Assembly (NCBI RefSeq): GCF_006345805.1
Contig: NC_043005.1
Coordinates: 20,894,001-20,958,000 of the forward strand
Reading direction: 5' to 3'
Source of the DNA: Octopus sinensis
Taxonomy: Eukaryota
DNA length: 64,000 nt
Shown here: one piece after another, positions 1,827-62,871 of the stretch
Layout of the letters: every line of letters begins with the position of its first letter
Position numbering within the stretch: position 1 is the stretch's first letter
Position numbers and translations under genes: made by a program
Notes under the pieces: model-generated
What the model was told of the DNA's origin: nothing
Database searches by the model: none
Seen by the model: only the letters and a program-made list of their open reading frames with translations

Positions 1827-2057
1827 CTGACAAACCTTTGCAGATTAAAAAAGTTAGCATACAAGAGAAGGATACTATTGGAAGGCTTAGAAATGTGAAA
1901 TTAAAGACGTGTAATGAAGCTTGCCATCAGTATCCGGGATGTAATTCTTATCAGTACAATGAGAAGGCTAAATTCTGTGATCTGAGCAATGCAACTGAGT
2001 TGACTGGTAACTTTAAACCCAACAATGGAAGTTGGGATGTGCACATAATTAACCCAG
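1827..2057 (+). CDS. Exon A1: PAN/Apple domain (DKPLQIKKVSIQEK...CNEACHQYPGCNSYQYNEKAKFCDLSNAT...WDVHIINP)
   Basis: tttttcag| acceptor at 1826; donor G|gtctgt at 2058; 231 nt; 4-Cys PAN core CxxxC-x5-C-x-S...C. Confidence 0.9.
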
Positions 2058-2899
2058 GTCTGTAGAATTTTTTCCATTTAACTTATTGTGTGTGTCAGTG
2101 TATACTTATATGTAATGTGTGTGTATGTAGATATATCATCATCATTTAACATCTGTCTATCTTGATAGCATGGGTAGGATGCTAGGCATGAGCTGGCCAA
2201 GTCAAAGACTACTCCTGACTACTGTGTCAGTTTTGGCAGATTTTATACACACACACACACTCATATATATGTATATATACATATCTATATATAAATACAC
2301 ACACATATGCATGTATATATATATATATATATATATATATATATATATCAGGTATTGAAGCCATCCTCATCATCAAAATACAGGTTAGTCTGGTCATCTG
2401 TCACGTATGAGTGATATCAGAATTCTGAAGCAACATCTCTTTGGCCAATTCCCAACAGGAAGGTCAGTTGTGCTTCAAAGACAAACAAAAAGACAATATG
2501 AAGCAATGCAACATTCCCTTTTCTCCCTGGGAAAACAAAGCATCAGAAAGCAGGGCCTGGCACCAGTTCTGCTTTTCCTCAGTTAAAAGATTTGAACAAA
2601 CTGAACACTAACACCAGGACTATCTTCCTCTAAATGGAAACCTTGCCTGTCATTGTGGTTTTGTGGAATGAAATAAAGCAGGCCTTGCCATCCACTCAAG
2701 AAAACATAATGAATGAGCACAAGCACTCATGTAAACTAAGTCATCAATCTGTTTCATTTGTCATTGATGATGATGATTATTATTTCATTTATTTGCCACA
2801 AAGGCGAAGGATGAGTGAGACAATACAAAGACTGACATAAAATGATTAAAAAAAAAAAAAGAGAAAGAAGACTGAACCAGAGCTAGAAGAGGTGAAGTG

Positions 2900-3006
2900 A
2901 TGATGATGATAATGATGATATGATATATGATGTGATGTGATGTATATGATATGATGTGATATATGATATGATGATATATGATATAATATATGATATGATA
3001 TGATAA
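2900..3006. repeat. (ATG)/(ATATG)-type simple repeat between two ~70-bp direct repeats (2784-2855, 3007-3078)
   Basis: Direct reading. Confidence 0.8.
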
Positions 3007-3639
3007 TTTCATTTATTTGCCACGATGGTGAAAGATGAGGGAGACAATACAAAGACAGACACAAAATGATAAAAAAAGTGGAAGTATACATGGTGTACAC
3101 TTAAAAAGAAGGGTAATATGCATAACATCCAAAGGTTAAATAAAATGTGGCAGGGTGAGTGATGCAGATGTGGGCTTCCTGATACAGGAAAACCTCTAGT
3201 GATAATTGAGGAACCCCACTATCCAAGAGTTCCCTGAAACCTCAAGAGCAAGTGCCCTCTCCAATTCCATCTAGCTGACTTACAAATCTGTACTGAAAGA
3301 GATGACATCCACTCTCAACATTTTCACAACTTTCACCTACCTTTCAATTAACTCACTCGAGGATAGCACTTCCCCCTCCACTCTCAATTTCTTTTGAAGT
3401 GAAACTTGAAGAAGTCAATGAGAGTTCTACCAAAGTGGAATGTATCCGTCCTCATGCCTTTCAGCTTTGTCCATCAAATAACCTCTTTTTCCACAGCCAC
3501 CAGGCAAAGGAAAACTGCCATGCTTGCCCGATTGAAAGAGGGTGCTAGGGTAATCATCACTGCAGACTCAGCCAACAGACGGATCTGTTCAACATGTGAA
3601 AGCAGCTATTTAGCATAACCCCACAAGTCAGCAATGCCT

Positions 3640-4345
3640 GGACACTGAACAGTTTTGTCACTTTGCGCATGTCTGAAACAAGCACATCCATGTCTGTAGA
3701 GTTTATCTTGCACCAGTAGTGCCCTCTGGCAGCACTGCCCGGCCAAGGACAACTGGAAATTATCCATAACAGTTCCTGTCCACAAAGTCCTTCAGAACAG
3801 ACTAGCCAGTTCATTTACGTCAGCACCCAGAGTCTCCCCAAGAACATGCTGCTAATCCTTTATAAATTTCTACAGCACATGCCATTGTCGATCCCTTTTC
3901 CCAACTGGTACAGGGCTGAGAGTGCTTGAATATATTCCAAATAAGAGAATCTCCAATCTGGTCTAGCAGTAACTGGAACAAGGTGCGACAGTCAGGTGAT
4001 AAATAATGAGAGAGATGATGTATGCATTTGCCACTTTCGCCTGACCTTTCAAGGACAACTTACTCTTAACCCATTTCTGGGTAAGTCAGGCCATCATGTT
4101 CACCACCTCATCCCACTTCTTATCAACCTGTTGATTGGGACCAAACTAGACCCCAAGCAGTTTAACTAGTTCATTGGTCCAGCATCTGATGGTATTGTCC
4201 TGCCTCTCCAGGATCCCAACCACATACTTACCAATTTGTCAGTGTTGATTTTAGCCCCTGCTACTGACTCATATTCCTTTAGGATGGTGCCAGCCATTTT
4301 TACTTCAGAGGTTTCCAGCACAATGATGGTGATGTCATCCACCTT
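3640..4345 (-). mobile_element. L1/Tx1-like LINE ORF2 fragment (RT C-terminal part and zinc-finger region)
   Basis: Minus-strand translation DDITIIV...EYESVAGAKINTDKLVSMWLGSWRG and RALLVQDKLYRHG...QCPGIADLW. Confidence 0.7.
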
Positions 4346-59960: not shown

Positions 59961-60596
59961 TTTATGTTTGAACATATATATATATATATATATATATATA
60001 AAAGTAATTTTAGAGACCGAACCACCTTCACCTCAATCAACACTGAAAGTTTTTATACCTGACCACTCCATGAAATGTTAAAAATTAAATCTGATACTAA
60101 CTATATCTATTCTGAATCCTGTATTTTCCATTTATGAGACTACACGTGTTTCATGAAAGTACGTTGGTATTGATTAGAGACGAGGTATCTAGTTTCAATA
60201 CTTACTTGGGTCAACATACTACCAATCTTCCTCGACATTTTTCTCTCCCCCTATCTTTTATATACTTCCCTGATAATCTATATCTTCAATATCTTTTATA
60301 TACTTCCCTGATAATCTATATCTTCAATATAATCTTACTTAATATGTACAAATGAATAGAAATACAAATAATAAATAAAAATAATAACTGAATATTAAAA
60401 ATTTAAGGAATAAAAAATAAAATAAAAATTTAAGGAATAAAAACTCAAGGAATAAACATTCAAAGAAGAACTCCCATTCATTCTCTACATCTAGTAATGT
60501 TTCATAGTGATGCTTTCTAGCCTCTTCCTTTGCAGAGTTACTAACTGCAAGTGACCCATCATCCATATGAACACACTTCTCTCCCATAACATCACA

Positions 60597-61518
60597 ATTT
60601 TTGAATCTTTACCCTTTGAACAGCAGATCAAGAAATTAATTTTTCGTAACTAAACACTTTCAAACTTCGGACACTGGTAGAATGTGTCATATAAAACATG
60701 TTTTACTCTTAGTGTTGTTGAGAAAAGTTTGTATTTTCAAAGTTATTTCTTGTTAAAGTTGTTGTATTCCAGTAATTTCAACCCATCAATGACGTGTATT
60801 CTGCTGAATAAAATTACTGCTGTTTGACATATTTCATCTCAGTTACATTTGTATGAATAAATGAATGCATCTGAAGCATGTTTAATTCATAGCACCACCA
60901 CAATCGTTCATGCATTTCTACAGCTTTTAGATTTTTTCCCCTGTTTTTCAGCTACTATTTTCCCCTGTACCTCCCACTCCAATTTCTTCATTTTTCACTT
61001 TTTTCCGTAATTCTAACCCTAAAATCCCAACCTTAACCCTGACTCTAAAACCCCAACCCTAGCCCTAAAACCCTAATCCTAACCCTAAAACTCTAACCCT
61101 AACACTCTAACCCTAACTCTAAAACCCTAACCCTAACCCTAAAACCCTAACTCTAAAACTCTAACCCTAACACCCTAACCCTAAAACCCTAACCCTAAAA
61201 CCCCAAAGCTAAAACCAGTACAAATGCATGAATGATGTCATAAATAACAGTGACAAACCAAATATACACTGTCGATAGTTGTTGACAAACAACGGCAGTA
61301 ATTTTATTCAGCTGAATACACATCATTGAATGGTTGAAATTACCGAAATATGACTACTTCAACACCAAATAACTTTGAAAATATAAACTTTTCTCAACAA
61401 TACTAAGAGTAAAAGATGTTTTATATGACACATTCTACCAGTGTCTGAAGTTTGAAAGTGTTTAGTTACAAAAAATTAACTTCTCAATCTTCTGTTCCAA
61501 GGGAAAAGATTCCAATTT
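60597..61518. mobile_element. Fold-back element: ~330-bp imperfect inverted arms around a degenerate (CCCTAA)n / CCCTAAAA array
   Basis: ~60600-60930 is the inverse of ~61205-61515; telomere-like repeats ~61012-61215. Confidence 0.8.
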
Positions 61519-62637
61519 ATTCCTAGGACACTGTCTTGCAAACCAAAATACTTCAAGCCTCTGTTCCTCATTTAGTTAGACATTGGCTAAGTTCTCCCTT
61601 TCTGCTTCACTCTTAGTTAAGTATGCCTGCTTCCTAGCTTCCCATCTAGCTGCCTCATGTAACTCATTTCCAGGCCTTCCAAGCCTGTTTCTTCGCTCTA
61701 ATGGCTTTGTAAACCACCTTCCTTATTTCAGCACCACATTGCACCAAGGCCTGGCTGTGACTTTGCACCAACCACAAATTTGGTCTGCAGCACTCAGCAA
61801 GTTGTCCTGTAGAAACTTTCACTTATCATCTATGTTACAAGTTTTAAACTCCTCCTCCTCCTCTTCTCATCAAATGCTTCATGTAGGGTATCTCTAACTT
61901 ATCAAAGAATCCTTAAGCTATCAAGGACCCTTAAGCTTCCAGGATCTTTATACTCTTTTCAGTAACACCACATTGCATCTTACTATACCATCTCCAATTT
62001 TTACTTTAAATCTTAATGGTAAATAAGGAAACACTACTACTACGACTACTTTATGTACTGAAAGTATTAGATGAATACATTGAAGTACAATGTATCTGAA
62101 ATTTTACATAAAATATTAAAAAGCTTTCCGGGCCAATATTTTTCCTGTGGGCAATTTATTATAAAAACAAACCTATCCCAAAACCAGTTTTTAGCATAAG
62201 ACATCCTTCTCAAAATCCACTTCTATTCTTTTATAACATGAGCCATACTTTGAACTTCACCTTTATGATTCAGTTGCAATACTACATTTGTACATCCCTC
62301 TTCTGACAGTGAGCTTTTGTTTATGATTTAATGGCCATAACAACACTTATTCATCGACGCTCTACCGAATATCACTTTGACCCTATGAAAATACATCATT
62401 AGAAGTGAAGTTATATAAATGTGTTATGTGAAACTTAACTTTTGAAATACATTTACAAATGATCTCAAGATGTGCTACAGTTCACATGAATCCTTTTCAA
62501 GTTGTCATTTTGTGGACCAATTATTTGTTTATAATAAATTGTATATTTAAAACAAATTTTTCACCAGATGTTTTATAATATTAAATGTGTGGGTTTAAGA
62601 ATGTATTTCTTGTCTTTTTTCTTTTATATTTCTCCAG

Positions 62638-62871
62638 CAAAAGATGAAGTTATTACATTTAGAAGAACTATGATACCAGGAGAGGATACTTTTGAACGAG
62701 TGAATAATGTGAGCTTAAAGGAGTGTGCTCAAGCTTGTCATCATAATCCAAAATGTAATTCTTATGAGTACCATGATAAACATAAGTTCTGTGATCAAAG
62801 TAATGTGACTCACTTGACTAATAACCTTCAACCCAGCAAATGGGGTTGGGATGTTTACATCATTAACCCAG
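62638..62871 (+). CDS. Exon A4: PAN/Apple domain (KDEVITFRRTMIP...CAQACHHNPKCNSYEY...FCDQSNVT...WDVYIINP)
   Basis: tttctccag| acceptor; G|gtcagt donor; 234 nt. Confidence 0.9.

Follow-up and report, generated by a model that had tools for sequence, protein, structure and literature searches.

Eleven PAN and Sushi exons of Octopus sinensis as a likely internal section of a giant octopod array in the molluscan PAN-(CCP)-GON family

What kind of gene, or part of a gene, is represented by eleven one-domain exons spread over 61 kb of the Octopus sinensis genome? The exons lie in a stretch of 64,000 nucleotides (NCBI RefSeq assembly GCF_006345805.1, contig NC_043005.1, forward-strand positions 20,894,001 to 20,958,000), which is referred to as a whole as the window and is numbered from its first letter. 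A preliminary description, made from the letters alone, read them as coding for a large extracellular protein of tandem [Sushi-PAN-PAN] units, lineage-specific and possibly secreted, with an architecture that could not be matched to a named gene. In our view the 11 exons, over 61 kb, are likely an internal stretch of a giant octopod gene, or of a tight same-strand array of genes, within the molluscan PAN-(CCP)-GON family.

Both strands of the whole window were searched by motif scans and, for each domain type, by tblastn. Eleven domain-sized coding segments were found, all on the + strand; the tblastn copies are exactly these 11, with no degenerate additional PAN or CCP copy on either strand of the window. 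Each exon has a polypyrimidine-AG acceptor, a GT donor, phase 1-1 boundaries and a length that is a multiple of three. The spliced product is 2,328 nt long, or 776 codons with no stop, and contains 44 Cys (four per domain) and 10 N-X-S/T sequons (NAT, NGS, NVT three times, NKT, NTT, NAS, NIT and NVS). Given a stop frequency of 5.2% in the non-exon + frames, the chance of 776 open codons is P ~8e-19. The domain order is PAN_B-CCP-PAN_A-PAN_B-CCP-CCP-PAN_A-PAN_B-CCP-PAN_A-PAN_B, where PAN_A and PAN_B are the names given here to two PAN subtypes that alternate in a fixed order. The extent, exon count and product length first described (1827 to 62871, 11 intact exons, 776 aa) were matched exactly, and the order PAN-CCP-PAN-PAN-CCP-CCP-PAN-PAN-CCP-PAN-PAN, the sequon list, the invariant Cys and the two alternating subtypes were all recovered.

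In the joined product, Pfam detects seven stretches of PAN_1 (PF00024; E=4.7e-53, 177 bits against a gathering cut-off of 21.4) and four of Sushi (PF00084; E=1.5e-11, 44.9 bits against 20.7), and the exons scanned one by one were all above the gathering threshold (six PAN exons at 31-40 bits and one CCP exon at 27.8 bits). The exons make up 3.8% of the 61-kb span, with introns of 1.1-19.4 kb. They are given here with their counterparts, as residue ranges and identities, in the Octopus vulgaris model CAI9728790.1 (P0155).

1827..2057, + strand: exon 1, PAN_B, 76 aa; PAN_1 E=1.8e-7; P0155 2839-2914 (100%) and 1956-2031 (96%)
6937..7107, + strand: exon 2, CCP/Sushi, 57 aa, one of the four Sushi stretches; P0155 2032-2088 (98%)
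14445..14684, + strand: exon 3, PAN_A, 80 aa; PAN_1 E=1.6e-9; P0155 2089-2168 (96%)
16135..16368, + strand: exon 4, PAN_B, 78 aa; P0155 2169-2246 (94%)
35720..35890, + strand: exon 5, CCP/Sushi, 57 aa, first of the CCP-CCP pair; P0155 2247-2303 (91%)
41701..41871, + strand: exon 6, CCP/Sushi, 57 aa, second of the CCP-CCP pair; P0155 2304-2360 (91%)
44362..44598, + strand: exon 7, PAN_A, 79 aa; PAN_1 E=7e-10; P0155 2361-2439 (97%)
44428..44435, + strand: in-frame (phase 1) internal donor GTAAGAAA within exon 7 (…TGGA/GTAAGA…)
45675..45905, + strand: exon 8, PAN_B, 77 aa; PAN_1 E=2.9e-10; P0155 2440-2516 (97%)
53073..53243, + strand: exon 9, CCP/Sushi, 57 aa; Sushi E=3.4e-6; P0155 2517-2573 (100%)
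55937..56173, + strand: exon 10, PAN_A, 79 aa; PAN_1 E=1.6e-8; P0155 2574-2652 (96%)
62638..62871, + strand: exon 11, PAN_B, 78 aa; P0155 2653-2730 (88%); the gene runs on past the window

A closer look at the individual exons shows that the PAN_B of exon 4 has Val in place of a near-invariant Trp (…KVDVY… against the family consensus NWDVY). The same change is present in the orthologous units of O. vulgaris and O. bimaculoides, which by sequence marks it as an old, tolerated variant. The internal donor of exon 7 has an equivalent that the P0155 model uses in at least 5 sister units (junction "…KTLW/T/D…"), cutting PAN_A to ~23 aa. This may reflect regulated domain skipping or alternative splicing, or it may be an artefact of the gene model.

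The O. vulgaris model places these exons in a much larger whole. The window product is 95.1% identical, ungapped, to residues 1956-2730 of CAI9728790.1, and the domains of the two, CCP-CCP pair included, follow in the same order. The match was reached via cluster membership of a related model, P0012; a word-indexed homology search with the joined product missed it, and a second search with exons 7-11 as the query returned only P0012. Beyond the equivalent of exon 11, both P0155 and P0012 continue with a CCP and then a PAN_A. CAI9728790.1 is 4,470 aa long, is encoded over 415.7 kb and contains ~60 PAN_A, PAN_B and CCP domains, as parsed solely by in-house hidden Markov models of the three domain types, which leave no unexplained segment of more than 50 aa. 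Within it, the 10-11-exon block seen in the window, CCP-CCP pair included, recurs at least 3 times. Its same-strand neighbours are a PAN/Sushi product of 2,247 aa, within 3 kb on the upstream side, and another of 861 aa, 4.5 kb away downstream; CAI9728796.1 (4,283 aa), on the same chromosome and with a nearby accession number, ends …A-B-C-A-B-GON. Together, the PAN/Sushi models on this chromosome total at least ~12,700 aa. The 776 aa of the window are a small internal slice of a far larger array and not a gene.

While the match is close, the two sequences are not identical: exon 1 is best matched in another block of CAI9728790.1 (2839-2914, 100%), and exon 11 reaches only 88%. No sequence identical to the window was found among the O. 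bimaculoides locus L001, the O. sinensis loci L002 and L003, or the P0155 model, and the window is either the orthologue of the P0155 block or an extra or converted copy. The automatic name of CAI9728790.1, [quoted passage not shown], is misleading. SVEP1 carries VWA, EGF, pentraxin and HYR domains beside its CCPs, and the present models fall outside that family, although P0004, P0012 and P0155 are named after it; no VWA, EGF or pentraxin domain was found in the family models scanned with Pfam, and P0004 and the window product show PAN and Sushi only. Misfitting automatic names are common around this family, with "SVEP1-like", "ADAMTS9/20-like" or "gon-1" attached to P0004, P0012, P0155, P0174, P0178 and proteins of Haliotis, Patella and Pecten.

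The array extends to the other Octopus genomes. The window product is 75-79% identical to O. bimaculoides LOC128248837 and LOC128248838, which are less than 10 kb apart, and another O. bimaculoides model, LOC106869402, ends in GON. The window and the O. bimaculoides locus run collinearly, with 80-91% nucleotide identity that takes in the introns, and the CCP-CCP pair and block order are common to the window and to the O. bimaculoides and O. vulgaris models. The window introns are much longer than their O. bimaculoides counterparts (for example 19.4 kb against ~1.8 kb). In O. sinensis itself, the array models L002 and L003 are separated by ~467 kb (CM016867.1, 20.80-21.27 Mb), and no annotated model was seen between them in the flanks examined. 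This interval probably belongs to the array and lacks annotation. All of the giant models start at an internal Met and end by reading into introns, so that their partition into "genes" is an annotation artefact of uncertain extent. As a separate observation, the O. vulgaris equivalent of the 467-kb interval holds thousands of PAN/CCP codons.

Parsing of all relatives gives the grammar of the family: a signal peptide, then (PAN_A-PAN_B-CCP1-3)n, then GON. Signal peptides are carried by the one-unit paralogues P0008 and P0175, as well as by the Argonauta protein P0021, and GON, with a Pfam E=5e-35 in P0008, also terminates the array models P0003 and P0178. The whole A-B-C region of P0008 is 46-53% identical to the array proteins (E down to 0), and P0008 is in turn retrieved by the window product. 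From these full-length N-termini the natural unit is PAN_A-PAN_B-CCP, with the family ending in a GON that lies outside the window; the tandem triplet first described is real, and it is the [Sushi-PAN-PAN] register that has to be changed. Neither the window nor the array loci L001-L003 yielded a GON exon, a signal-peptide-like exon or a transmembrane segment, and no transmembrane-like hydrophobic segment occurs in the window product, P0155 or P0178. The single hydrophobic segment of P0009 is a retained intron, and the same sequence follows exon 10 of the window (56174 onwards).

A named small member is GON-Abd-1 of Abdopus aculeatus (UniProt R4G2C1), a 465-aa protein with a signal peptide, one unit and a C-terminal GON. 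Its orthologues LOC106874924, LOC115215708 and CAI9728787.1 are separate, conserved small genes of three Octopus species (O. bimaculoides, O. sinensis, O. vulgaris). This one-unit gene is 98% identical in O. vulgaris and O. sinensis, against about 90% when O. bimaculoides or Abdopus is compared. GON-Abd-1 has the same PAN_A-PAN_B-CCP unit as the array (46-53% identity), but it is single-unit, is encoded by a separate gene and evolves more slowly. We considered whether splicing of the array, or a collapsed assembly of it, could have produced GON-Abd-1 and rejected this, since separate orthologous small genes (about 86-91%) are present in three Octopus genomes.

Further afield, the cuttlefish forms are PAN_B-CCP-CCP-GON and CCP-GON, Argonauta has a signal peptide followed by (A-B)2, and small secreted PAN and/or CCP-GON proteins of about 290-420 aa are found in Lottia, Patella, Haliotis, Pecten, Gigantopelta and Sepia. 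In all of these but Sepia, the small PAN-(CCP)-GON proteins measure ~330-420 aa. Unlike the array, these molluscan proteins (Lottia V4AAD3 and V4B3P1; Sepia GON-Sep-2 and CAE1175485) have one PAN, in Sepia no more than two CCPs, and no tandem amplification. The small PAN-(CCP)-GON protein is probably the ancestral form, and within this older molluscan family the octopod arrays are an amplification specific to their lineage. The lineage-specific character suggested by the preliminary description is borne out at this level. Its statement that the architecture is unmatched fails against databases, given the 95.1% match to CAI9728790.1 and the GON-Abd-1 family, and holds insofar as the literature searched yielded no characterised protein built from this repeat.

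Most small molluscan members are automatically named ADAMTS9/gon-1-like. ADAMTS9, ADAMTS20 and C. elegans GON-1 have the C-terminal GON in common with the family, but their protease parts are absent from the family members scanned: Pfam found no reprolysin, disintegrin or TSP1 domain in P0001-P0008, P0011 or the molluscan relatives, only PAN, Sushi and GON. The family is thus outside the ADAMTS9/20/GON-1 metalloproteases. All that is known of GON function is that those proteins require it within the endoplasmic reticulum for transport to the Golgi, a role that does not depend on protease activity (PMC3338439). An AlphaFold2 (AF2) model of GON (P0008 residues 241-465) has a pLDDT of 88.9 and a pTM of 0.86, with no significant neighbour in the PDB (best E=0.05, TM<=0.22). 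A role for GON as a collagen-C-propeptide-like trimerisation module, suggested by weak sequence matches (Pfam COLFI and PDB), is not supported; the top 50 structural matches listed include no collagen C-propeptide.

Do the small paralogues point to venom as the business of the array? On this proposal the posterior salivary gland would produce the array protein, whose action on prey tissue might, for example, be one of spreading, adhesion or targeting. The name GON-Abd-1 reportedly goes back to Ruder et al. 2013, a study of posterior venom-gland transcriptomes in coleoids, and the names GON-Abd-1/-2 and GON-Sep-2 all match that format. The "metalloprotease" class of Ruder et al. (2013), from Abdopus and Sepia, is carried in venom reviews (PMC5554399), a label that is contradicted here because the domains of the family are PAN, Sushi and GON only. 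The fast evolution of the array is also as in venom proteins. However, what came from the venom gland were small one-unit paralogues and not the array, and a search of the O. vulgaris salivary proteome supplements did not find the family. We regard a venom role of the array product as unlikely on this balance. Under the preferred reading, of a giant octopod gene or array, expression may be in the posterior salivary (venom) gland, the source of the one-unit paralogues, or in another secretory epithelium.

PAN/apple and CCP domains are classically known as binding and spacer modules. For one A-B-C unit we built an AF2 model from an O. sinensis paralogue (87-90% identity to exons 10-11) and 35 aligned family units. 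The model of this paralogous unit (pLDDT 89, pTM 0.82) has the apple fold, an alpha-helix on an antiparallel beta-sheet, with one helix and 4-5 strands in each PAN, and Foldseek matches it at a probability of 1.00 to factor XI (FXI), prekallikrein, TgMIC4, SML-2 and the N domain of hepatocyte growth factor (HGF). The best match is to the apples of factor XI and prekallikrein (Foldseek E ~1e-5), which are tandem and protein-binding, but at only 13-15% identity and a low global TM-score. These proteins arrange four apples in a disc, followed by a trypsin-like serine protease, whereas the octopus family has no protease and its PANs alternate with CCPs; it is not a member of that group. Toxoplasma gondii MIC4 and Sarcocystis SML-2 have tandem galactose-binding PANs (Foldseek E 3e-4 to 1e-3, and a weak sequence match to 4a5v), but they come from unrelated lineages, are 12-16% identical and have no CCP or GON; the likeness is one of fold only. 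The N-terminal PAN of HGF and plasminogen gives the best single-domain superposition (root-mean-square deviation 2-3 Å, 24-28% identity), and the HGF N domain binds heparin; there, a single N domain is followed by kringles and a protease-like domain, unlike the octopus array. Ligand binding by the PAN modules is a prediction from fold resemblance only. The window product is net basic, with 123 K+R against 95 D+E.

Taken with the family grammar, the modelled fold and the sequence suggest that the product is most likely a secreted multivalent binding glycoprotein. It would be a string of [PAN_A-PAN_B-CCP(1-3)] units, forming a heavily N-glycosylated, disulfide-locked and lysine-rich rod, in which the many fast-diverging apple/PAN modules could give multivalent, low-affinity and high-avidity binding to glycans, polyanions or proteins. 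The CCP modules would act as spacers and the C-terminal GON in secretory-pathway handling or anchorage. The large, Cys-rich and glycosylation-rich extracellular type of protein first proposed, built from a tandem three-domain unit, is supported; a lectin, adhesion or immune role is conceivable.

How did the array arise, and is it maintained? Paralogous exons within the window are 65-78% identical in nucleotide sequence, and this identity extends hundreds of bp into the introns; the units themselves are 41-67% identical in amino acid sequence. Intron-spanning identity and the recurring block indicate segmental duplication at two levels, with later gene conversion: exon triplets, and blocks of ~10 exons, have been duplicated as genomic segments dozens of times in octopods. 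Two exons stand out. The protein sequence of exon 1 is 100% identical to that of a different super-repeat block of P0155 (2839-2914) and 96% to its collinear partner. Exon 8 (45675-45905) has 98.7% nucleotide identity to a paralogous O. sinensis exon in L002, with a synonymous substitution rate (dS) of 0. The sequence pattern in both suggests gene conversion between blocks.

Across 54 PAN_A, 68 PAN_B and 96 CCP copies of the family, no domain deviates in its four Cys, and a few aromatics and the CCP Trp are likewise invariant, such that the pattern C-C-C-W-C is kept in all 96 CCPs. Sequons occupy fixed columns in 63% of PAN_A copies, at two positions in PAN_B (76% and 47%) and in 34% of CCPs. 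The median pairwise identity among domain copies is 46-58%. The ratio of nonsynonymous to synonymous substitution (dN/dS) is 0.71 against the O. bimaculoides copy and 0.57 against the O. sinensis copy, and relative to O. bimaculoides the exons are hardly better conserved than the introns. By these sequence measures, the scaffold is kept while the surfaces change fast.

Several points weigh against placing the window in a functional giant gene or array. The homology searches gave genome-derived models only, with no transcript-assembly (Logan) protein across the exon junctions, and the O. vulgaris salivary proteome supplements make no mention of the family. The giant models are truncated at both ends, which leaves gene number, the true N-terminus and the link to GON unproven for this slice. 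Finally, a dN/dS of ~0.6-0.7, with exons barely above introns, also fits relaxed constraint.

A first alternative takes the locus as a combinatorial cassette array, in which subsets of exons are spliced into a diversified PAN/CCP recognition repertoire for immunity or prey, as in Dscam or FREP. Since all exons are phase 1-1, any subset would be in frame, although symmetric phase-1 exons are usual for extracellular modules. The highly diverged units and their dN/dS of 0.6-0.7 would suit such a repertoire, as would the in-frame internal donor of PAN_A that is used in the O. vulgaris model, and the exons included in gene models do differ among species. The main support for this alternative went once three Octopus genomes were seen to carry GON-Abd-1 as a small conserved gene of its own, and transcript-derived proteins were missing from the homology search results. 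We consider combinatorial splicing of this kind improbable.

We give similarly little credence to the locus being a decaying and largely unexpressed by-product of runaway segmental duplication, looking intact through youth or gene conversion. The dN/dS of 0.57-0.71, the near equality of exon and intron identity against O. bimaculoides and the conversion signs at exon 1 (100% to the other P0155 block) and exon 8 (dS=0) are in keeping with decay, as are the 467-kb O. sinensis gap without models, the fragmentary RefSeq models and the model units in which PAN_A is missing or truncated. But the paralogues of the window are old (41-67% in amino acids, 65-78% in nucleotides), and 11 of 11 exons nevertheless keep their frame, splice sites, four Cys and sequon positions, for which the neutral chance is ~1e-18 for stops alone. 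The block order, including the CCP-CCP pair, is likewise kept across the window, O. vulgaris and O. bimaculoides.

It is very improbable that the O. vulgaris PAN/Sushi models form one transcription unit, with ~150+ phase-1 exons and internal donors used combinatorially or with a product among the largest secreted proteins known; array models in O. sinensis lie more than 0.5 Mb apart. If the combinatorial form were true, octopods would possess a strongly diversified PAN-lectin repertoire, made by alternative splicing, for immunity or prey recognition, similar to Dscam or FREP and made from apple domains.

As an internal section of a giant octopod gene or array, the locus records how a widespread small molluscan PAN-(CCP)-GON protein gave rise to octopod arrays of ~60+ domains per model over hundreds of kb. 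From sequence comparison, what appears to be new is the massively amplified form; the molluscan PAN-CCP-GON family is already in databases. Fast units on a fixed disulfide and glycan scaffold are typical of molecules at the interface between host and environment, as in venom, mucus, immunity and fertilisation, and the locus is a clean natural case in which exon triplets and higher-order blocks have both been amplified, with gene conversion besides. The locus is apparently undescribed in the literature searched, where we found no description of PAN or GON-domain proteins in cephalopods, and in annotation it is fragmented and misnamed (SVEP1-like, ADAMTS9/20-like, "metalloprotease"). Correct annotation would matter to catalogues of cephalopod venom and immune genes. 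The locus alone opens no long-standing question.

The window is AT-rich (34-41% GC), with many microsatellites and retroelement fragments, which marks it as eukaryotic; no tRNAs were found in it. Individual features are as follows, with strands where assigned.

61013-61216: degenerate interstitial telomere-like repeat (AACCCT)n/(TTAGGG)n, ~200 bp, in intron 10
21425-21784: (AT)181 microsatellite
30715-31378: satellite-like array, 52/148-bp, ~660 bp
39718-40104: 193-bp unit in tandem duplicate, 99% identity
58894-59859 (-), 57905-58171 (-), 29734-30345 (+), 50737-51285 (+), 10368-10643 (+), 9230-10054 / 31378-32169: transposon fragments in introns

The intron fragments comprise non-LTR retroelements (RVT_1, endonuclease-RT), a mariner-type transposase and a sub-threshold GIY-YIG match, which might be Penelope-like. 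The window introns are several-fold longer than in O. bimaculoides because of transposon insertions.

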